A stretch of DNA of 64,000 nucleotides. Origin: Fimbriosthenelais zetlandica. Its lineage: Eukaryota. The notes under the pieces were generated by a model. The model was not told the origin of the DNA, did no database searches, and saw only the letters and a program-made list of their open reading frames with translations. Shown here one piece after another: positions 5,662-49,700 of the stretch. The stretch covers positions 19,654,001 through 19,718,000 of the forward strand of contig OZ365118.1 of NCBI GenBank assembly GCA_977030845.1, written 5' to 3'. Each line of letters starts with the position of its first letter. The first letter of the stretch is position 1. The position numbers were made by a program, and so were the translations under genes.

Positions 5662-8600
5662 CTAATGAATGTCAAGCCTTCAGTCGGGACGATTGTTCAA
5701 TGTTGTGATCGATCCCAAGTATAAAACAGTCTGGTCACTGATTAAATGGAATTTTTGCAGTAAAACGTCCATCCACCTTCCCCCCTTTAGCAAATTGCAA
5801 GAACAAAAGAAACAGAAGATTTATTGTCTTAATTACAGTTTGCAGCAGGTTTACTTTGCCGGGGAGAAAATGAGGTTGGCCACCATTCCCGCCACGACAT
5901 AGAGCCATTTATTTTGGGCGGGGATCATTTTTTTCTCCTCCCACACTTGAAGTCGGGCAGAGCAACCAGTAGGGAATGAGTGTGAGTAGAGTCACCTCCT
6001 ACTGGTGGGTCAAAGTGCCGCCATAAACTAGATGGTAGATGACAGTCGCCTAAGTCGATATTAAGGAGGATATTGCCTGTTAGGAACCCTTCTATGATGG
6101 GGTATATTAGCTCTGTATCACCCTGCACGGACAGTATTGATGAAGTATATCACTCATTGTCTCTGACACCTTTCTCTCCCATAGACAGCCACCATATATA
6201 TATATCATTGTATTCAATGTCTTATTTTCCCTATGTCCATTAGAAAGGACACGTATGATTAAAATTTGATATTTTCAGACGATCTGCATCTGTCAATAGA
6301 GATGTGGAGATGACTTTACTGAGAGTATGAGGCACGGATTGATTGTCTTTCTGGCGTCTTCCTCTAGCAATACGTGGCTTATTTATGTTAATACAGCCGT
6401 GTACGATGACAATAGTATAAAAACCCTCCCTCATCGACCTTCCTCCATTATCATTCTAAATCCCCAGCCAGTGTCAACACCCCAGTATTTGTCTCCAGCC
6501 AGAAATCGCATTTTCATTTTGAAAGCCAAGTTGCTTTTTTTGGTGCAGAGCAAACTGACAGGAGTCGGTGGTATGTTTGGTGAGGTAGGGAATATCCGGG
6601 ATGTTACGTACGGGGCATGGGGAAAGGTGGAGGGAATCCAGCATAGTAAAGCCTTATCACCTCCTATCATGCTTCAATGCTACCATTAAATGAGAGTAAG
6701 AAGAACCGTGGAGCATTAGTAGGCTAATATTCACATCATGTTAGATTGTTCTCACTGCTCCTCACATCACCAGACTCCGTGTAGTGTCATGATTCACCGC
6801 TAGGTGATTACTGGTGAATTATAGTGAGATAAATACCCGGCCTGCAATATGCTGCCCATATAATCACCTGTATGCTGCCAGCTTCCCTCAACACAATGTG
6901 CTCGCCTCCAATCCCATATTGTACTTTGAATTTCAAATTACCTACTACCTTATTGCCTTTATTGGCAAGCCATATGGCCTTACTGCATAGGTATAGCGGT
7001 TTTGTCTCTCTCTCTTAATATCCATTGTGCATGATTCAAACTTATTTCATGTGTGGAATATACATACATGTATACCCCCCACACAGTTATAATTAAATGT
7101 TTTACGTTTTAAGAGGTGAGAAGATGTGACATTATTCATGACCGTAAAACCCCAGCTTAACACTAACCCTCACAAGTCACTTGTTCATCCCCTGATTATG
7201 CTCCCGCCGATATCCTCCCCCACCAGCCCTAACAAAAAATCCATCCCGACTAAGCTCTTATTTGTTTTATGTCCACCCTTGATACCTCGCCGCACCCCGG
7301 CCATTCCCCGGCCATTGCCCGCTCCTTCCCATGGGAAACAATGGCCGGTAAAGTGTGGACACGGCCAGCCGTGCATGTCAATGACATGCTATAACTCCCA
7401 ACCTATCATCAAAACGGCCGCCCATCTTAAGAGTTCATCAGGTTTTGGGGTCGCCCTGGCAGCAGCTTGAAGATTCCAGGATAGCATCTCCCTGCTGCTG
7501 GCCGATTGTCCAGACGCAATTTCCTCTGACAAATTGCTTCAGCATTGGTATCCGACTTTTAAGAGGCCATGCTCTGACTTGAGCTCAGCATAAAGTAGGC
7601 TCATGTAAATCAGTGAAAAAACCTCCAAGGCTGGGTGCTGGGCTGTCTGGCTCACCGAGCCTACACTTCCCACTGACTGATGTATGAAAAACCAGCTTCA
7701 TACATGTCTAATGCCATGCCTCATGAATAACACGTCCTCCACATTATAGACTGGTATCCCATTTATAATTGATACCATCACAGACTGCCTGCCAGCCATA
7801 TAATTGCTCTCTACTGCTATCTGTGTCATTTACTAAGCTTAGAGATACTTAATAGTCCCACTCAGTCAACCCATGCATTTCAATCCGCCCCTTGATCATT
7901 GATGTGACATTTACCATAGGCTTCTATAGGCTCTCTGTGTCTCTACAATAGCTCATGGCATCTATGTATGTAAAGTCCTGGCTGTGAGCAGCTCTTGGTT
8001 TGGCAGACAGTGGGACAGCACCAGCTCTGCCCAGATGTTAGAGACAGGAACCGCCCCAGGCTATCCCACTGATGGCCAGGCTGGGTATAGATACATGGTG
8101 AAGGGTGGAAGGACAAAAGCGTGTTGGCAAGCAGCTCCACATACCAGACTTTGAAGTCTAGTCAATGCTCAGGCTGTTTTCCAAACCATTAGGTCTAAAA
8201 CTTATATATAGAGCTTAATATCTGGATATTTTTGTACTTTTGACACATGTATGCCAGACTTGCCAAAAATGGGGAAAAGGACATAATATCACATGTAATT
8301 TGTGCTAGAAATCTACAGTGAATGCATCAGAAGTTGAAATTATTCTTGACTTTCTGAGTTACTCATTATTCCTAAGCATGCAAAATGCCAGAAGCTTCAT
8401 TATTGTAATAATGACCCCAGCCTCCTATAGGATGAATAGTACCTTGTGACTATTGCATAAATTGAGAGCCCTATAGAAACCCTAAAATAGCATGAATGAT
8501 GGTGGCACAAAAGTCCTGAGACCCATAAAGAGTTAGACCCATTCACTCCGTCTGCTCGGAGCAGAAAGCGCAGGAAAAAATGGGGGTAAAGCATGTGAGG

Positions 8601-8842
8601 GAGCGTGGACAGGGCATTGTGAGCGGATAAATCTACACACAACATGCACCACTATATGCTCAACCCTGGACAGACCAGCAAACAGCCAACGGCTATAATG
8701 CATTGTACAGTGGCCTATTGGGGACGGGGGGGGGGGGGGGGCGGGTGGGAGGGAAGCCCTTTCTAAAGGCCCTGTAGTGAAGGCAGAGAATGGAGGAATC
8801 CTAACGGAATAAGATCGTGTCTCACTCCAGGAAATACTTGAT

Positions 8843-8906
8843 GCGCATGTCACCGGAAGTGAGAGGAAGTGCCGCCATGTTGTGGCGTTACTATTGGGTG
8901 GGCGTG
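8843..8906. promoter_or_regulatory. Housekeeping-type promoter motifs: tandem ETS sites, YY1 site, partial NRF1 site, GC box
   Basis: CCGGAAGT 8853-8860, GAGGAAGT 8863-8870, GCCGCCATGTT 8871-8881, GCGCATG 8843-8849, GGGCGTG near 8900. On the minus strand the YY1 site overlaps aacATGGCG (ATG at 8878), followed by a GTGAGA donor at 8825. Confidence 0.55.
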
Positions 8907-11900
8907 ATTGAGTGTGTCTCTCCATTTTACCCCGTCACTGAGGTCAGACATGGAGTGAGAGAGTCACTGTCTATCACAGTTCAGACTTTAATGAAGTCCC
9001 TCTATAGCCCCGGACACACTAGGCCGGTTATACCAGCCTGGTCTTGAGTTGGCTCCTCAGCCTAGTGAAGCACTAACTGATTGACAGCTGATTGAATACT
9101 CTACTGATTGAATACCCATTGTACATGAACCCAACACTTTATCAAAAAGATATCGTAGATCCCATCAATCACAATGACTCAGTACAGTCTATGGAATAAT
9201 TGGTTCAATGTATTCAGGGCAGTATTTTCCCCTGTCCTTGAATGATAGAATCTGAGTCTGAGAGAAATAAATGAACTCGTCTCGTCTCGATTCGCCCTAA
9301 AGATGGAGGCAGTGATAGGCAATCATATCTGACCAGAAATCCAATGACAAGACCAATCATAGAGGGATGTCTGAGATAAGGGAGGCCGGATATTATGTAA
9401 TAATAATGCCAGCATGCTACATGCTTCCTTTGAGAGATTGAATCAAATCTAGAGTGTCAAAACCCATTAGCTTTCTGTCCATCTCAAAAAGAGGAAGCGA
9501 ACCAAGCATGCCAAGCTTGAGGCAGGGCAAGCTTCAGAGAGCGCCAGAATGATGATCGCCTTAATATTATGAATATTTCAATATTCAAATTTTGGGAAGT
9601 CATCTAAAAGTTGATATAAAGGAGCAGAATTCATTGCTATCCATTGTATCTAGAACGAAAGATTCTCAAATGCAGCGCCTTAAGATTGCACTGCTGGGAC
9701 CGTTAAGAAAAAACCAGATTGTTTTTACAGTGTGACAGTGTGAGCTCATGTAATATCAATAAATTGCAGGGACTTACTCTTATTGTACAAACATCTTTAG
9801 TGCTTCAATGAAAGTCAAACACTTGACTTGGGGAATACACAATATCTGAATGTGAAGACTATATATTCCCAGCCCTCCTTGACCATCATTTATCTCTGAT
9901 CCTGGAGACCAAATATTTATCAAATGTCTGTGAGTAAGGTCTGACATAAATCTTAGTGTTGTGATAGGGCCGGGATTGTTTGTGGGGAAGTGATAATGTA
10001 AGCATGGCCAGGCCGGCATGGCCAGATGAGCTGTGAGTCTCATTTAATATACATTACATGTCTCTAACACTTACATGCTGTTAACCACATTAAACTGTGT
10101 TAAATATTAACATTTATGTGGACATTTATACATGGATATATTTAATATTCACCCCTTTGTTTGGTCATTTCAATAATACCTGGTTTAAATTGAATGAGTG
10201 TGTTCCCATGAGGGAGGTGTAGATGAGGGTTTGGGGATTTGATGAGCTGCTCTCAGCATGTGAAACCATTACATTAGTAACATCATTCCCCTCACAGCTT
10301 GATTGACTCAGTCCTGCTCCCACACAGTAGACTGACCACGTCCCCCGCTGACCACAGTTATTCTTTATACAGACTAGCATATATCCTACCAAAGGGCTTA
10401 CAATAAGCCCCTTGATCCTTCTACAGGGATTATTTCTAGACCGACTATGCAAGTCTATTGTTTTGACTCGTCATGTGTTCTTGTTGCCTGTGTGGGGAGT
10501 TATGTCTGTTCTTGTTTCCAACTGTCCATTTCTGATAATTAGATAACTTCATAACTAAGTTTTACTTTTAGTAGAACCAATTTTAGTCCCACTTTACGAG
10601 GAAAGAAAGTACTTTGTAAAGTGGTCATGACTTATAATAAGTATTCTAGACTATAACGTTTAGACCAACAAGGTGCCTTGTCTGCTATATAACGAGCAGG
10701 GAGGGGGAAAGGTCACTTATTTTAGTCATCTGAAGGGAAACAATGAACGCACTCTCTCTCCCCAATTCACCCCTCAACGCAAACAAGGTGAGGGGTAACT
10801 CTAGTGTAACCGCCTTATCACCCCATGCTAAACACATGTAGAGGGTAGAGGCTATACCCTGAGACTATACAACATCATCAAAGGCCATGTAATGAACCCG
10901 GAGAATCCTCTAATTAAACAGAAATTAATCATGTGCTCCGGAGTGGAATATCATTCAATGGAAGGCAGTATTGAATTGGATTCTTATCAAAAACTGGGAT
11001 GTGAAAATGCCATGAATTAATGAACAATGAGTGGTCTGTCCTCTCATTGTGTAACGTTGACTGGCTGTAGGTGGGTGTAGGTAGAGGAGATGAGTAGAGG
11101 TTGTAGGCTGTGGCTGACTTGTTAGTTCAGGCAGTGTTCATTTCAGCCCCTGTAATTGTAACATATCACTCAGTTCCCCCTCCTACCACTCTGTCTACCC
11201 TCTCACTACCAGTCTCCTCCTCTCACTATGATAAACCTCCCTCCATGCGTTTACAATCCCTCTACACCACCCACTCTATGTATGTGGGCTGGATATTTAT
11301 ACAAATAATCATAGAGGTGGCTCTATCCCACGTTATGATGCATCCCCAAGTGGAGAAAGTTTAACTCATTAATTGACGTGAAAATTAGCTTAAGAGACAC
11401 TTGTAATAGGCTTCTAAGTTTTGGGACTTAGATCGTAGACTAGCATGGTACCCTAAACTTACTATAGTCTAGTAAAGTAACAACCATTTGATATGGCTTT
11501 CAGATCTGGATTTATAATTAGAAAAACACTGGCATATCCTGATATATTGACAAGATATCTACGATTCTATTCACATCTTACCTATAAGATAATGTTAATC
11601 TTGCACATCATGATCTAGCTTCTATTATAAAGATAATGACCTGTGCACGTCTATGCTGTAAGATGTGATATTCAGGTGGTGATCGTGGAGTGACAGTGTG
11701 ACCATTGTTGTATGTATTATACCAGCCATGCTCACGTCTACCACTGATCGCCCATCACACATGTTAAATATATACAGCCTATTATCCTTATCTCCCATGC
11801 AATATGACCAACCGTCACTGGTGTTAGAGCGGTGATTGATTCACGGGCGGGAGGGCTGGGGCAGTGGAGCTATCTATGCATGGAATGTGTCCATCCAATA

Positions 11901-13730: not shown

Positions 13731-14915
13731 TACTTCTCTTAAGCTAGAGATCCCAAACCCATATGGACGGTTTAAGATCATCTCCTACGATCATTCAACC
13801 CTTCTTGCCGACCTTACAGACTTGATTTTAACTATCTGAATCATAACTACTAGAAGTAACATTGTTGAGACCCACAGCACTATATTAATTGAGGAAATTC
13901 TAGAATTCTGTTAGAATTTTCTATATTAAGTCTCTATATGATTGGATGGATCTGTAGGCTCCTATAGAGGGACGGCTACATTACTTGTCCCCATTCCTCG
14001 AGGTGTCCAAGCAGGTTCAATGCTGGCAAAAAAAGAGATGAAGGCAGGCAGAATAATGAAGGGAAAGACCCAATCTATCACGGCGTCTGTATCTGGTCGC
14101 CCCATGCTCCCTCTAGCGGGATGTGGGCCAAGCTTTACGTCATCCACTTCCTCTTTACTGTGGTCGGGGCCTACCCTGGAGCTAACTCCTCCTTTTACAT
14201 TTTTCCTATATTTTATGTCGCTATATTCCCTTCATCTATTAACAACCCTTATCTCTCATATCGCACTAAGGGTTGACTCTCCCAATGGCAGATCCGGAAA
14301 TCCAGAATATTGTCTAGAAAAGTGATCAGCCATAGTCATGGATATGCCTATGAGCTAATTAAACCAACCCTGAGGTGTTTAAACAAATGGTTGTGCCCCC
14401 TGCCCCCCGCCCACCACCTACCCCAGTACTTGTAAAGGAGCGCCTCGTTTTGATCTTGTTCATGTTAGACGCTCTTGTAGCGTTCCTCAAGCTGAGGTCG
14501 CCAATAATCATTCACTGGTCATGGGTAGTCCTCACCCCCTCACCAGAGGGCGTCCCCTAAAACGATGGTCAGAGTCGGGGTTTATGTTGTGTTCATACTC
14601 GGCCGATTCTTATATTTCTTCATCTTGAAAAGTTGATTTATAATTTAGGTCCTACAATCATGTAAACTTAGTATATATTATGAGGAAGAGATTCTGAAAT
14701 GATTGTAGCAAGTCAGGGATTCCGTTATTGTAGAGGATTTATTTCACTTCAGTGTTTCACAGTATGAAATACTTCTTACAGAGTTAAACACATGGTACTC
14801 ACACTACAATAACAAGACAGAGCAGGATTATAACATGTGTGATTAGTTTAAGAATTAGTCCTAGATTACATTTATATCTGGACATACAATACTCAGCGTC
14901 GGCAACATATCAAGG

Positions 14916-17900
14916 TTAATAGTTACAAGTTGTTGAAGTATAATGACATGTTTTCAGGGAATCATCCCACACTGTACCCTCGGCACACATTTGCTCATAA
15001 AAGAGGCCGCCACCGCATGCCACATAGCCGTTACATCGCACACACGACTGATAGTTACCGTCAGGCCGTCTTGAACAACTTGGCGCACACACCGTCGCAC
15101 CCTCCTTTCCTGAATGCCCTCTCACTTCTGGTGCTTCAGTAGCTTCTGGTGCAGGTGCTTCAGTAGCTTCTGGTGCAGGAGCTTCAGTGTTTTCTGGTGG
15201 TGGAGCGTCAGTGTTCGGTGGCTGGGTGTCGGGTTGTTCTGGGGGAGGTGTAGTTGTTGGTCCAGGTGTCACAGAGCAAGTTGTTGATTCCCCAAGACAC
15301 GCTTTATCAGTATCATCCCAGAATGTGCCCACAGAGCAGTTAAATACATACGTCAGCTCGTTAGAACACATTAAGAATTGACTACAACTTTCACAGTATT
15401 GGTGGTTACCATTAGCCTGACCCTCGCACGACGAGATACAGTTGGCCCCTCTCTTCCCCGCTCTCAACTCATCAATTTTAGAGGTTTCTAAACATGTTTT
15501 GGAGATAACTTCACACCTTTTAGATGAATCATCCCAGACTAAGCCCGGTGGACAGGCCCTTTCAAACATTTGCCTGTTTGAACATTCTACATATAGACTA
15601 CAAGTATCACAGTGTTGATAGTGACCATCGTCCAGGTCCACGCATGATGAGACACAACTGCAAGTGGTCGAGGCAAATTCACACATTTTAGATCCATCAT
15701 CCCAGACTAAGCCTGGTGGACAGGACCTTTCATACATTTGCTTGTTTGAACAGTGTACAAATAGACTACAACTATCACAGTGTCGATACTGACCATCGTC
15801 CCGGTCCACACATGATGAGACACAACTGCAAGTGGTCGAGGCAAATTCACACCTTTTAGATCCATCATCAAAGACTAAGCCTGGTGGACAGGACCTTTCA
15901 TACATTTGCTTGTTTGAACAGTGTACAAATAGACTACAACTATCACAGTGTTGATAGTCACCATCGGCCAGGTCCACGCATGATGAGACACAACTCTCAT
16001 CTCTCTTATCCGCTCTCAACTCAGGTTCCTTACGCTTTTCAAAGCAAGTGGTGGAAATAGCTTGGCACCTTTTAAAATTATCATCCCAGAATAAATCTTT
16101 TGGACAGGGCCTTACATACATAAGACTGTCCCAACATGTCACATAGTGATCACAACTATCACAATCTTGATAGTCACCATTGGCCCTGCCCTCGCACGAT
16201 GAGACACAGATCTCAAAGCAAGTGGTCGAGGTAGGTTCACACCTTTTTACATTATCATCCCAAAATAAACCATTTGGACAGGGCCTTACATGCATCTCAT
16301 TGTCCCAACATGTCACATAGTTACTACAACTATCACAGTCTTGATAGTCACCATTGGCCAGGCCCTCGCACGATGAGACACAGATCTCATCTCTCTTACC
16401 GGCTCTTAGCTCAGCAGGTGCTTCAGTAGCTTCTGGTGCAGGTGCTTCAGTAGCTTCTGGTGCAGGTGCTTCAGTAGCTTCTGGTGCAGGTGCTTCAGTA
16501 TTTTCTGGTGGAGGAGCGTCAGTGTTAGGTGGCTGGGTGTCGGGTTGTTCTGGGGGAGGTGTAGTCGTTGGTCCAGGTGTCACAGAGCAAGTTGTTGATT
16601 CCACAAGACAAGCTTTATCAGTATCATCCCAGAATGTGCCCACAGAGCAGTTAAATACATACGTCAGCTCGTTAGAACACATTAAGAACTGACTACAACT
16701 GTCACAGTATTGATGGTTACCATTAGCCTGACCCTCGCACGACGAGATACAGTTGGCCTCTCTCTTAACCGCCCTCAACTCATCGATAGGACATGTCGAA
16801 GAAAAATAGAGACATTCCTTCGCTAAGCCATGCCAGACTGTGCCGGATGGACATTTTCTCTTATCATGTAAGTTCCCATTGCTACAGGTGGCATAGAACT
16901 GACACCCATAACATGAGTGATAGTCGCCATCTCTCATACCCACACATGAACTGACACACCATGAAGGCGTGTCATGTACAGCCCGTGTGTCAGAGTCCTT
17001 ACTGCAGTCAGGAGGGTTATATGTACACATAACATTCCTGTTATCCCACCGCAAACCTGCCGGACATCTACGTTCATAAAACACGCCACCACTACAACTC
17101 ACGTAAAATGTACAACCTTGACATGAGTAATAATGCCCATCATTCACATTATGACATGACGCCACGCAGAAAGGGGGGCGCTTCCTGGTTGACAGGGCCC
17201 GTGTATCAGGGTCCTCCATGCATTCTGGGGAGTCGTACGTACACCAGCCCCTGGACCCTTGCCATTCCAAACCAGCCGGACATCTACGTTGATAAAGCAC
17301 CCCACCACTACAGCTGACGTAGAAGGTACAGCCATAACAGGACGTATAATGACCATCAGGCATATTCTTACACGATGACACACAGGAAGGGGCTTGCTTA
17401 TGATGGCTTTTCTTCCCCAGCAGTGACAGTAGAGATGGTTTGGGAGGGGTTATAGGCACACCTTTGGGACAATTTCTGTGCCCACGTTGACATGATTGTG
17501 TGGTTTGATCCCAGAAGAGATCGTCAGGGCAGGCTCGTCTGTCATAGAGGTGACCGTTACTACACGTGGCGTAGTGTTGACAGCTGTAACAGGACGGGTA
17601 GTCACCCGACTCCAGCCCCTCACATGATGTGATACATTCAGGGCGTTCTGGTCTTCCTACAACAAAAATTAATATGGTCAATATTTGCCAAACTCAAACC
17701 TATAGTCCCACTCAAAGCTGTATAGTCCAACTCAAAGCTAGAGTCAAACTCAAACCTATAGTCAAAGTCAAAGCTACAGTCTAACTCAAACCTATAGTCA
17801 AAGTCAAAGCTATAGTCTAACTCAAACCTATAGTCAAAGTCAAAGCTATATATTCAAACTCAAATTTATCTATAGTCAAAATCAAAACTATAGTCAAACG

Positions 17901-18066
17901 CAAAGCTATACATTTTGATTGCATATAGTTTTGTATAAAAGAAAGGCGATGCTTTGCAATACAAAATTAACGTGTGGATATCAATGTCCTTATATAAAAC
18001 ATACTCACCAAACAAAATACCTGAAGTGGTGGCTGCAAAGAGTAGAACCAGCATCAACGGTGCCAT
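14916..18066 (-). CDS. Secreted chitin-binding protein with 12 peritrophin-A/CBM14-like domains, about 932 aa
   Basis: Exon 1 (18066-18009) encodes signal peptide MAPLMLVLLFAATTSGILF with a GTGAGT donor. Exon 2 (17656-14916) follows ttgtag and is phase-matched. Twelve repeats of C-x3-C-x5-G-x-Y/H-x2-C-x2-C-x2-Y/F-x2-C...C-x2-G/D-x2-W...C...C, plus two Pro/Thr/Glu/Ala mucin-like linkers. Confidence 0.9.
17690..17910. repeat. Intronic minisatellite, about 18 bp units (CAAACTCAAACCTATAGT / CAAAGTCAAAGCTATAGT)
   Basis: About 11-12 degenerate units in the intron of the chitin-binding gene. Confidence 0.85.
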
Positions 18067-43609: not shown

Positions 43610-45019
43610 CTAACTCATGTTATAGAGTGGCATGGCGGCTATAGCAGCTATAACTCCCACCATTGTAAACTCTAGTAATCTCATGGCAGTCTGATAACCC
43701 AGCCAGTACCAGGAGTCAGCCACCCCGGACTCAGACTCACACACCCTGAGAGCAGCCAGGAGGGTGAGCAGAATGTTAGACAGTGACAGTAGGAAGAACA
43801 CTCCCGCTGAGAGTAACACTAGTTTAGCTGCTATAGGAACCTTAGCTTCCACCGGGTCCTTTATACTGGACAGTCGCCTCCTCATCTGCTGTTTCTCACT
43901 CAGTTCAAACTCTATCTTAAAGCTCTCGTCTGATTCCCCACCCTCTTCCTGCTCTGAGATGGCCGCCATCTTGGGGCAGGCCTCCTTATCGTTGGTGGGA
44001 CAGAAGGGCTTGGTGCTCTGGGTGGAGGTCTGAGAGTCAGTACTGCATCCACCTGGACTAGTCACTGTCACTGACAGCGGTGACTGTAGTCTGTCAGGAC
44101 TGTTCATGTTCTCCTCCATGCTCCCGTTCCTCTCTATCATGGCCACCTCACTCTGTTTGTCCATCATGTCCTCTGGTTTTGAACCAAACTCCTCCTTCCC
44201 CCCGTTCCCCAGTAGTTGGCCGTTGCTGCAGCCTACACCTTTACCCTTCCATATCACCTTACTCATCCTGTTAAGCTTAACCCGGGTGAGATAGATTCTG
44301 GAGAAGAGTCTGAAGAAGAGGAACATATAGCATCCTGAGGCAGCCAGGCCAAACACAATGAAGTAGAGTTGACATATGAACTTATACAGTGAAGTCCCCA
44401 TTACGTAACTGACTACAATATCTGTACTGACGACCACTAGAAAGTTGATAGTGATTAACGTGATTAAAAACACTGGGTGTAGTAGGTACTCTGATAAAGT
44501 CAGAGCCTGCATCCTGGTCACCTTCACCAGAGCCACATAGACGAGTAGAAAGGCGGACAAGATGAAGGGATCAAAGGTGTGGAGAGTGATGAGAGATAAC
44601 ACTAGTGGTATATTGCCTGTTGAATGGTACGGATCTGAGAAGAAGTGGATGGTCCGAGTTAACCCACAGCCCAGCAGTAATAACTGGAGGGCTAGGTAGT
44701 ACGGTTTAGCCACTGAATCCTTTATTCTGATCACCTTAATGAGGTGGATCAGGGATATAAGGAAGAGGAAGAGGAAGACAGTAGCTGTGGTGTAGTTATG
44801 TAATCCCCAGGGCACACCACAGTCTCTGACCAGCACAGTCCAGTTAGGTTCAGGTCGGAGGTACCAGGGTCGCTCTCCTACCATACCCATACCCTCAGCG
44901 AATGTCATCACATCATAGTTCTCAGTGGGGCTGAACATCTCAGGTTCTGATTCGGGTTCTGATGAGGGGTAGTCCTTAAGGGCCGTCTCCACTTCAGCCT
45001 CCCCCCGAGCGTCCTCCAT
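43610..45019 (-). CDS. Intronless multi-pass (about 7 TM) membrane protein, PRRT3/PRRT4-like, 469 aa
   Basis: Long ORF with good start context and seven hydrophobic segments. WGLHNY...; TRTIHFFSDPY; ...RLLEFTM resemble remembered PRRT3/4-family motifs. Long acidic/Ser-rich loop between TM5 and TM6. Confidence 0.75.
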   Translation of the reverse strand: MEDARGEAEVETALKDYPSSEPESEPEMFSPTENYDVMTFAEGMGMVGERPWYLRPEPNWTVLVRDCGVPWGLHNYTTATVFLFLFLISLIHLIKVIRIKDSVAKPYYLALQLLLLGCGLTRTIHFFSDPYHSTGNIPLVLSLITLHTFDPFILSAFLLVYVALVKVTRMQALTLSEYLLHPVFLITLITINFLVVVSTDIVVSYVMGTSLYKFICQLYFIVFGLAASGCYMFLFFRLFSRIYLTRVKLNRMSKVIWKGKGVGCSNGQLLGNGGKEEFGSKPEDMMDKQSEVAMIERNGSMEENMNSPDRLQSPLSVTVTSPGGCSTDSQTSTQSTKPFCPTNDKEACPKMAAISEQEEGGESDESFKIEFELSEKQQMRRRLSSIKDPVEAKVPIAAKLVLLSAGVFFLLSLSNILLTLLAALRVCESESGVADSWYWLGYQTAMRLLEFTMVGVIAAIAAMPLYNMS

Positions 45020-47711: not shown

Positions 47712-49700
47712 ATGACTTTAAAGTGTTGGACGCTTCTCGGTGCTTGGATCTTGGTGTTAGTAGATGGATATGAAGTTGAGATTTTAAATGGAAAGAAGGG
47801 CCAGGTGACATTGAAGGCTTGGGGCAGTGATCTGAGGTCTGTGTCTGATGTGAACATACCCAGTAATGTGACCAGCATTGTGATCAGTAGCACGTCTATC
47901 ACCTCTCTCATTTCTGGGTTGTTCAGCTCATCTAATGCAGACATTACATCTCTCAGTGTGATCAGGAATCGTCAGCTCTCTACTATAGATGACCGAGCCT
48001 TCACTCACCTCTCACACCTCACAGAGCTGAGACTGTCCCGTAATTCTCTCAATACCTTCCCTCACCTCTCCCAGTCCTGCTCTAAACTCACCTTCCTCGA
48101 TCTCTCCTTCAATGTCATAGACAAGGTCACATCTCACGCATTAAGTTCATGTAAACACTTAAAAACACTAAAGCTGAACAACAATAAGTTACAAACCTTG
48201 CCTGATCTCTCAGTCTCAGCCACTTCCCTCACCACCCTCCATATTGGATATAATCAGTTGTCTGATTTCTCTCAGTTTATCCGTGGTTTGAAACGGTTGC
48301 AAACTTTGGTTGCTGGTGGTAACCCATTACATTCGATCTCTGACTTCAGACTCAACCCCAGGCTGACAGCTTTCTCATGTTTCCCCTGTGACTCCCTCAA
48401 GACTTTCGATTACAGTTTTGTGGATGTTTCCACCTGGGTGTCTCTCTATCTTGATCTGAAGCAGGTTTCTATCGACTTCATGCCACAAAGCATCTTGGAT
48501 GCCACTCGTAAATCTCTCACGTATCTCAGGTTGGAGTATAATGGTAGTGTCACATTTCCTGGAGGTTCTCTGGATCTGATGGAGAAGCTTGACAATGTCT
48601 ACCTCCATGGTCTTATATTCGAGGCTGTCCCTTTATTCCTGAGAAGTCGACAATCAATGAGTCACTTGTACATCAGAGAGTCTGTGATAGAATCCTACAG
48701 CAGGTCATCATTTGATGGTTTTGCTCTGCTCTTTACTCTGGTCGTGTCCTCACCTCAGCTGACCATCCTTCCTGACGTCACCAAGTCTACCACATCCATA
48801 CAGACCCTCTCTCTAATGGACGGCAGCATCCGGGACATCCCAAGGTCATTCCTCTCTAAATTCAAGGTCATTAAAAAGTTCCTTGTACAGAAATGTTCCA
48901 TCAGAGAGGTCGGTGACTTGGGGGAATCATCTACTCTAGAGAACATTAATCTGGATGATAATTTGATATCCTTCATTGAGGTGGGAGCTTTCTCTGGTTT
49001 AACTAATCTGAGGACGATCAGTTTGAATGGTAATCAGTTACGGACCCTGTATAAGGTAGAGTCTACCCTGCTCACCAGCCTCTACCTGCTTGGTAACACC
49101 CTGACTTGTGATGCTGAGTTGATGTGGATGTTTGATTTGTTAGAGAGTAATCCACAGCTCCGTGCTCAGTTCTACTGTGGCTGGCCGTGGAATCAACTCA
49201 TGTCTAGTATGACTGAGGAACATCTAGCACCGCCATGTGAGTGAAAACTAACACAATCTTAAATAATACATTAATATTTATTCATCCTATTAATTGAATT
49301 ATACATATGAATTATATATTATGTATAATTTATCTTAATAATACCAGATTTTTTCCAACAATTGTTATTGTGACACCAAATCCTGCAACCTCAAGTCTTG
49401 CTTTGTGAATTACTTCAATATAGTTTCCCACAATTGTAAGAATATGTATGACTTTGTTCATTAACAGCTGGTTCATACAGGGATGTAGGAGGAGGTCTGT
49501 ATGTTGAGGCGACCCTCGCCCGCTTCCTGGTTCTCAGCTCGTCTAATATGAGTGTGACAGACTCTGTCACATCCCCCACCATCCTGAGCTGTGCCAGGAC
49601 CTGTCACAGACACACCACATGTCTGGCCTTCAGCTGGAGTGACAGGAGAATCTGCTCCCTGTATTCACCACCAACCCTCACTACAGTAGCTAGTCCATGA
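47712..49700 (+). CDS. Secreted leucine-rich-repeat protein with a C-terminal PAN/Apple-like domain, 2 exons, about 585 aa
   Basis: Exon 1 (47712-49236): signal peptide, more than 10 LxxLxLxxN repeats, LRRCT (GNTLTCDAELMW...CGWP). GTGAGT donor at 49237 and ttaacag acceptor at 49467, phase 1. Exon 2 (49468-49700) encodes SCARTCHRHTTCLAFSWSDRRICSLY, a PAN-type Cys pattern. No TM segment. Confidence 0.85.

Follow-up and report, generated by a model that had tools for sequence, protein, structure and literature searches.

The gene and its domains

The window analysed here is a stretch of 64,000 nucleotides from Fimbriosthenelais zetlandica (GenBank assembly GCA_977030845.1, contig OZ365118.1, positions 19,654,001 to 19,718,000 of the forward strand), and all positions refer to it. 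Its minus strand carries an intact two-exon gene (18066-18009 + 17656-14916) for a secreted, mucin-like protein of 932 residues with multiple chitin-binding domains of the CBM14 family. Five of the linkers between the domains carry a Lys-Arg pair (K-R), four of them within the motif E-L-R-A-x-K-R, and these linkers may be processing sites of a polyprotein. The parts of the gene are as follows.

18009-18066, minus strand: exon 1, with the ATG and a hydrophobic signal peptide of 19-20 residues (MAPLMLVLLFAATTSGILF-G)
17657-18008, minus strand: intron (GT...AG), containing an 18/36-bp tandem repeat at 17689-17910
14916-17656, minus strand: exon 2, which encodes the full set of 12 CBM14 domains with their linkers and two mucin-like spacers, and ends in the stop codon TAA (14916-14918)
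14738-14743, minus strand: AATAAA polyadenylation signal, about 175 nt past the stop codon

The long open frame of the minus strand (14916-17681) has no ATG of its own ahead of the first domain. The start codon is provided by the upstream exon, and the hydrophobic N-terminus read from it is that of a protein entering the secretory pathway. The donor GTGAGT follows 18009 (a second in-phase donor is possible at 18021), an acceptor AG precedes 17656, and the phase-1 join gives the open frame of 932 residues. Most of the sole intron is taken up by its tandem repeat; read on the plus strand, CAAACTCAAACCTATAGT occurs there about 12 times.

Pfam found only CBM_14 (PF01607, peritrophin-A) in the protein, in 12 stretches (E 3.9e-82; 270.7 bits against a gathering cut-off of 22.1). 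Splitting the protein by a regular expression gave 12 domains (D1-D12) of 55-56 residues, each with eight Cys in the pattern C-x3-C-x10-C-x2-C-x5-C-x12/13-C-x13-C-x7-C. The initial annotation had reported eight Cys instead of the canonical six, and this was seen in all 12 domains. The domains and spacers are arranged as follows.

16791-17636, minus strand: D1-D4 (17636-17469, 17384-17220, 17168-17004 and 16958-16791), near-neutral, more aromatic type
16587-16751, minus strand: D5, acidic B type, 96% identical in amino acids to D11
16416-16586, minus strand: mucin-like spacer 1, rich in Thr, Pro, Glu and Ala, with 24-bp repeats
16044-16382, minus strand: D6-D7, linked by three residues (FEI), a 174-bp tandem duplicate
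15492-15992, minus strand: D8-D10, with a single Ser between each pair, a 168-bp tandem triplicate
15276-15440, minus strand: D11, a copy of D5
15132-15275, minus strand: mucin-like spacer 2, a copy of spacer 1, with PEVRGHSGKEGATV after it at 15090-15131, a stretch without K-R
14925-15089, minus strand: D12, followed by the C-terminal Asn-Tyr

The two spacers are 57 and 48 residues long, and together with the 12 domains they give the architecture of intestinal mucins and peritrophic matrix proteins. The domains fall into homogeneous blocks: D1-2, D3-4, D5 with its spacer, D6-7, D8-10, and D11 with its spacer and D12. Two plus-strand open reading frames (ORFs), 16354-16692 and 15187-15381, are antisense to the spacers and rich in Gly, Ala and Ser; they are mirror images of the repeats and not genes.

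Fold and cysteines

In sequence alignments to solved CBM14 chains, including Aplysia EHEP, Cys 2, 4, 5, 6, 7 and 8 occupy the canonical six-Cys register, and the additional residues are Cys 1 and Cys 3. A family alignment of 62 domains shows each of the eight Cys to be invariant or almost so. A fourth disulfide between Cys 1 and Cys 3 is therefore likely, the pairing being assigned by elimination only. The AlphaFold2 model of D8 with its preceding linker (FEKRKEPELRADKRDES + D8, predicted with the 62-row family alignment) has five short strands and a predicted local distance difference test score (pLDDT) above 90 in the domain. The best PDB matches to this model in Foldseek are all CBM14: the CBM14 of human chitotriosidase, Aplysia EHEP, Avr4, tachycitin and Der p 23. 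The model and its matches thus agree with the small, β-rich, disulfide-bonded fold of this family. The near-invariant CBM14 aromatic positions Tyr30 and Trp58 (numbering of the family alignment) are retained, and the domains are predicted to bind chitin. The eight-Cys subtype is also found in molluscs (Sinanodonta woodiana and Haliotis rubra). The Haliotis rubra members (P0030 and P0172-P0174) are named "proprotein convertase subtilisin/kexin type 5-like" (PCSK5-like) in NCBI, a name that was probably assigned in error by automatic annotation because of their Cys-rich repeats.

The linkers and the Lys-Arg motif

All linkers are encoded on the minus strand. In the list below, P1 and P1' are the residues before and after the putative cut behind K-R, and Cys1 is the first Cys of a domain.

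D1-D2: 28 residues, basic (including GKKSHHK), without K-R
D2-D3: MEDPDTRALSTRKRPPF; T-R-K-R at 17178-17189, then PPF and Cys1 of D3 (P1' = Pro)
D3-D4: SKDSDTRAVHDTPSW, without K-R
D4-D5: PIDELRAVKREAN; ELRAVKR at 16761-16781, then EAN and Cys1 of D5
D5-D6: the 57-residue Thr/Pro/Glu/Ala spacer, then AELRAGKRDEI; ELRAGKR at 16392-16412, at the end of spacer 1, then DEI and Cys1 of D6
D6-D7: FEI
D7-D8: FEKRKEPELRADKRDES; an extra K-R-K at 16029-16037 and ELRADKR at 16002-16022, then DES and Cys1 of D8
D8-D9 and D9-D10: one Ser each
D10-D11: LETSKIDELRAGKRGAN; ELRAGKR at 15450-15470, then GAN and Cys1 of D11
D11-D12: spacer 2, then PEVRGHSGKEGATV, without K-R

The four E-L-R-A-x-K-R and the one T-R-K-R all end exactly three residues ahead of the next Cys1. 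The coordinates and the three-residue distance given by the initial annotation were confirmed on the minus strand at all five sites, with 16002-16022 covering ELRADKR alone. Its broader statement, that the linkers between domain blocks end in K-R, holds for these five; the long linkers D1-D2, D3-D4 and D11-D12 lack the pair. The motif is also missing from the short linkers within blocks. Among the eight linkers of at least 10 residues, K-R stands at -5/-4 in five, and four or more pairs in register were obtained in none of 200,000 within-linker shuffles. The register is thus not due to chance. Because the linker copies are related by duplication, the statistic shows common descent and retention, and not independent origin. 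In the AlphaFold2 model the pLDDT of the linker is 49-64 (below 50 at R-A-D-K), as against more than 90 in the domain, and the motif is predicted to lie in a flexible, accessible linker.

Distribution of the motif in the genome and in homologues

A degenerate 33-place DNA pattern for ELRAxKRxxxC gave seven matches in the 447-Mb genome. Four are the sites described here, and the other three have codons for Ser or stop codons at critical positions; judged by this pattern, E-L-R-A-x-K-R is specific to this gene within the genome. None of the 31 distinct domain starts in paralogous eight-Cys CBM14 genes of the same genome, on another contig, has [KR]R in the register, and the linkers of these genes are of Thr/Pro type. 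One paralogue (L021:4157-8575; G000:C11, about 19.61 Mb) is a single ORF of 1472 residues with about 20 domains, Thr/Pro linkers and no dibasic linker. Further paralogues include a cluster with intron-split domains and a mucin-rich gene of 580 residues (L022; L023), neither with dibasic linkers.

Searched exhaustively with phmmer, 1.84e9 representative proteins yielded 1268 matches, with at most 57% identity over short stretches. The best 150 of these and other fetched homologues made a set of 160 proteins with 244 eight-Cys domain starts. Only one of the 244 has [KR]R in the same register, no protein of the set has two, and none of the 160 has the full motif. The linkers of these homologues are acidic, Gly-rich or mucin-like. 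A search with the D6-D10 region gave 10 matches (best 43%) and no true orthologue, and a query of the linker and D5 gave no candidate match.

The nearest relative found is P0025, which was completed by an ORF of an ENA assembly (L033:7908-9080) to 390 residues with five domains and a short mucin tail. It is collinear with D1-D5 at 37% identity, and the two proteins have the distinctive end of D4 in common (..VWH..AK.C.YFSSTCP..). The linker homologous to D4-D5 reads ..RLEPMEAMKGQES-Cys as against ..PIDELRAVKREAN-Cys here: the Ala and the Lys are kept, LR is replaced by ME, and the second basic residue by Gly. The D1-D2 linker of the relative carries EQLRAVGG immediately before the Cys. Either an (E/Q)LRA-type linker element existed before the K-R pair, or K-R was lost in the lineage of the relative; one distant relative could not set the direction. 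Another kind of homologue, represented by P0015, P0162 and P0163 from ENA assemblies, has 12-14 eight-Cys domains with a 22-residue linker, PYSSIKSQPxPIELxxTGTxGx, between every domain pair.

Duplication history and constraint on the motif

The block of IDELRAxKRxAN, D5 and spacer recurs as the block of the same linker type, D11 and spacer, with about 97% nucleotide identity from the codon before Cys1 onward. The 33 nt of the D5- and D11-side linkers differ at five places, of which two are synonymous, two lie in the codon of x and one in the P1' codon. The D6/D7 (174 bp) and D8/D9/D10 (168 bp) periods are later tandem copies of the domain alone, in which the motif was not copied. The start of D12, ..SCSRRPDGNYQSC.., matches the first domain of the five-domain relative (window 14925-15440; L033:7908-9080), which itself ends in a B-position domain and a mucin tail. 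The junction of D11, spacer and D12 therefore suggests the end of one P0025-like unit placed against the start of another, with tandem genes fused into the 12-domain gene.

Three of the motifs are followed by D5, D6 and D8. These domains are 49-62% identical at the protein level and 64-76% at the DNA level; across the three, only 23 of 55 columns are invariant (42%; 32% without the Cys), with no invariant run longer than five. The six fixed residues of E-L-R-A-x-K-R are identical in all four copies, and the nucleotide differences at these residues are all synonymous (TTG/CTA, AGG/AGA and GCG/GCC). The residues ahead of the motif, x, and the residues after K-R are variable. If the fixed residues ahead of D5, D6 and D8 changed at the domains' own rate, their invariance would have P of about 0.001-0.005, in a post hoc test on small numbers. 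Together with the synonymous-only changes, this points to purifying selection on the linker motif.

Candidate cleavage site and proposed processing

The convertases PCSK1-7 cut after K/R-Xn-K/R (n = 0, 2, 4 or 6), with R-X-K/R-R as the prototype for furin (PMC6682551). In annelid prohormones the cuts are made at K[K/R] (PMC3890597). All five linkers agree with the general rule in one register, with K-R as the n = 0 case (rule from PMC6682551). The genome has at least five loci for the convertase P-domain. At the four ELRA sites the P1' residue is E, D, D and G, all of which are acceptable to convertases. With Ala at P4 and the upstream Arg at P5, the motif looks to fit only the plain dibasic rule, and thus to be PC1/3-, PC2- or Kex2-like rather than furin-like. 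Furin was rejected as the most likely enzyme, since P4 is Ala or Thr. An S1P/SKI-1-type site (consensus R-X-hydrophobic-X) was also dropped, since three of the four copies have G or D where the consensus calls for a hydrophobic residue.

These features suggest that a Lys-Arg-directed convertase of the subtilisin type, acting in the secretory pathway, might cleave the protein endoproteolytically at these linkers. The precursor would then give up to six products of 12-20 kDa in fixed stoichiometry, each with one, two or three domains. If all five sites were cut, the predicted products, with their isoelectric points (pI), would be:

Product 1, residues 21-179: D1-D2, 17.4 kDa, pI 7.07
Product 2, residues 180-318: D3-D4, 15.3 kDa, pI 6.65
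Product 3, residues 319-441: D5 and spacer, 12.6 kDa, pI 4.05
Product 4, residues 442-571: D6-D7, 14.8 kDa, pI 4.34
Product 5, residues 572-755: D8-D10, 20.2 kDa, pI 4.63
Product 6, residues 756-932: D11, spacer and D12, 18.7 kDa, pI 4.20

Two products would be near neutral (pI about 7) and four acidic (pI 4.0-4.6). The N-terminal products had been described as relatively basic and the central ones as acidic; the former are near neutral instead (pI 6.7-7.1), and the acidic character was found in the central products and also in the C-terminal one (pI 4.05-4.63). Cutting would turn one twelve-valent cross-linker into several chitin coaters or organisers of low valency. The E-L-R-A at P7-P4 might be kept for extended recognition by the protease, or for a role of the C-terminal tail that remains on the product.

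Several observations weigh against this processing. The furin consensus R-X-K/R-R is absent, with P4 being Ala in ELRAxKR and Thr in TRKR. When K-R is numbered P2-P1, the upstream Arg of E-L-R-A-x-K-R falls at P5, an odd spacing, and not at P4 or P6. A matrix protein of the constitutive route would normally meet furin-type enzymes. The TRKR site has Pro at P1', a residue that convertases disfavour. K-R is preceded by V, G, D and G at the ELRAxKR sites and by R at TRKR; the Gly of an amidated precursor is thus present at only two of the four ELRAxKR sites. Amidation, which the initial annotation had read from G-K-R, was rejected as a conserved feature and would be no conserved part of the mechanism. 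At the homologous place the nearest relative has Lys-Gly (...MEAMKG... as against ...LRAVKR...) and no dibasic linker, which weakens the processing reading without refuting it. The repeated linker of the P0015 type is kept without any basic pair, and therefore a conserved linker need not be a cleavage site. The four ELRA copies come from one ancestor, and two of them flank a block with 97% identity, which leaves few independent observations. A word-based search with the whole protein gave six matches, the best with 33-34% identity, and no true orthologue. Searches of sequencing runs, with the whole gene and with exon 2 as RNA, listed none, and the expression and splicing of the gene are predicted from the genomic sequence.

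Alternative explanations

The chief alternative is that the protein is an uncut, secreted, twelve-valent chitin cross-linker or mucin, in which ELRAxKR is an inherited linker kept for spacing, charge or a binding epitope, or by gene conversion. This is a serious possibility, though held at clearly less than an even chance. Tandem CBM14 domains with mucin-like spacers are the standard architecture of uncut peritrophins and intestinal mucins, and the paralogues and homologues share it without dibasic linkers. The P0015-type linker kept without a basic pair, the site without Arg at P4 and the missing K-R in P0025/L033 would all be expected of such a protein, and the DNA of the motif is 76-90% identical between copies, so homogenisation is possible. 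However, the motif persists although the domains of the blocks that it separates have fallen to 49-62% identity, its fixed residues show only synonymous changes, and it does not occur in the short intra-block linkers. The distance from K-R to Cys1 is also the same in five linkers, among them the dissimilar TRKR linker, which spacing alone would not explain; moreover, the linker is predicted to be unstructured, contrary to a packing role.

The K-R linkers might instead be protease-labile hinges, cut outside the cell by trypsin-like digestive or matrix serine proteases, which would release or remodel chitin-bound modules after secretion. Exposed and flexible Lys-Arg linkers beside disulfide-locked, protease-resistant domains would suit such enzymes, to which the missing P4 Arg is irrelevant, and the Entamoeba Jacob lectins provide a precedent, being cut between domains by non-convertase proteases that recognise conserved spacers (PMC2698119). 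A trypsin-like enzyme, however, needs one basic residue and no register, so the conservation of the upstream E-L-R-A would be unexplained, and cleavage would be expected also at other basic linker residues, such as GKKSHHK in D1-D2. This explanation is considered improbable. The proposal that the domains bind a ligand other than chitin bears on the ligand alone and could hold whether or not the protein is cut. It comes from Aplysia EHEP, whose three peritrophin-A domains bind algal polyphenols, and which (8in3/8in6) is the best sequence match among solved structures (E 8.2e-07) and among the best fold matches. The identity to EHEP is only about 25%, the CBM14 aromatic positions Tyr30 and Trp58 are retained, and family members occur in the chitinous tube matrices of annelids (PMC8476170). 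A non-chitin ligand is considered very improbable.

Of the single explanations, cleavage into six products by a Lys-Arg-directed convertase would account best for these data; it is plausible in the face of real counter-evidence and put only slightly short of an even chance. The convertase-processed polyprotein of the initial annotation thus stands in part: the register of the motif, its specificity, its constraint and the predicted flexible linker support it, whereas the missing furin consensus, the Pro after TRKR and the relative with Lys-Gly do not.

Comparison with known systems

One close precedent is the Pif precursor of bivalve nacre (Pif177), which is cut at the dibasic RMKR to give the CBM14-bearing Pif97 and Pif80 (PMC11291548). 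Pif/BMSP is likewise a lophotrochozoan secreted matrix precursor with CBM14, and its cleavage at a dibasic site gives products of differing properties that act jointly on the chitin scaffold (PMC11291548). Pif has one furin-type RMKR site, with Arg at P4, together with VWA and laminin-G-like parts; whereas the present protein has CBM14 domains only and five candidate sites, none with Arg at P4. Membership in the Pif/BMSP family was rejected, since Pfam finds only CBM_14 and there is no VWA domain.

Cleavage of the multi-domain pacifastin precursors of insects at dibasic sites yields peptides of one or several domains, and the presence of the sites varies by lineage (PMC2689174). They resemble the present protein in their signal peptide, the tandem small disulfide-rich domains and the dibasic sites between some of them, and the variation between lineages is like that between this gene and its paralogues and relatives (PMC2689174). 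Their fold and function (serine-protease inhibitors) are unrelated, and the processing of the locust precursors has been shown experimentally, whereas that of the present protein is a proposal.

Intestinal mucins, peritrophins and the ChtBD2 proteins of annelid tubes share the tandem CBM14 domains and Thr/Pro-rich spacers and are secreted into chitin-containing matrices (PMC8476170). They are generally described as uncut cross-linkers with six-Cys domains; the present protein differs in its eight Cys (the extra ones being Cys 1 and Cys 3) and in the ELRAxKR linkers. The Entamoeba Jacob lectins also have tandem chitin-binding domains and are cut into smaller units at conserved inter-domain spacer sequences (PMC2698119). 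They belong to a protist and to another chitin-binding family, and the conserved spacer sequences, not K-R, are recognised. Tachycitin of the horseshoe crab has the CBM14 fold (1dqc is among the fold matches) and indicates that single CBM14-type modules can work alone; it differs as a single-domain product with five disulfides. Tachycitin is C-terminally amidated, a feature for which the present protein keeps no conserved signal.

Multi-domain CBM14 proteins are usually viewed as uncut chitin cross-linkers of gut matrices, tubes, bristles and shells. If the present protein were cut at its Lys-Arg linkers, the valency and charge of chitin-binding modules would be set post-translationally from one gene, and the single-site precedent of Pif would be extended to a true polyprotein. 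With paralogues and relatives that have no such sites, it would also be a clean natural test case for the origin of convertase sites between disulfide domains in tandem. The protein might then be the first CBM14 polyprotein, with five sites, four of them with a dedicated E-L-R-A-x-K-R, and six chitin-binding lectins of one to three domains and pI 4-7 in fixed stoichiometry: a one-gene chitin-matrix toolkit whose motif arose only in this lineage. This fuller claim is a tentative one and on the doubtful side. In literature searches of incomplete coverage, no CBM14 protein with repeated dibasic processing sites was found described. If the protein is uncut, the gene would only add to the lineage-specific peritrophin-like genes, with a linker that is oddly conserved.

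Other frames in the window

Two further minus-strand frames, 43610-45019 (469 residues) and 8533-8925 (130 residues), have no Pfam match. The plus-strand frame 47712-49244 (510 residues) encodes a leucine-rich-repeat protein.

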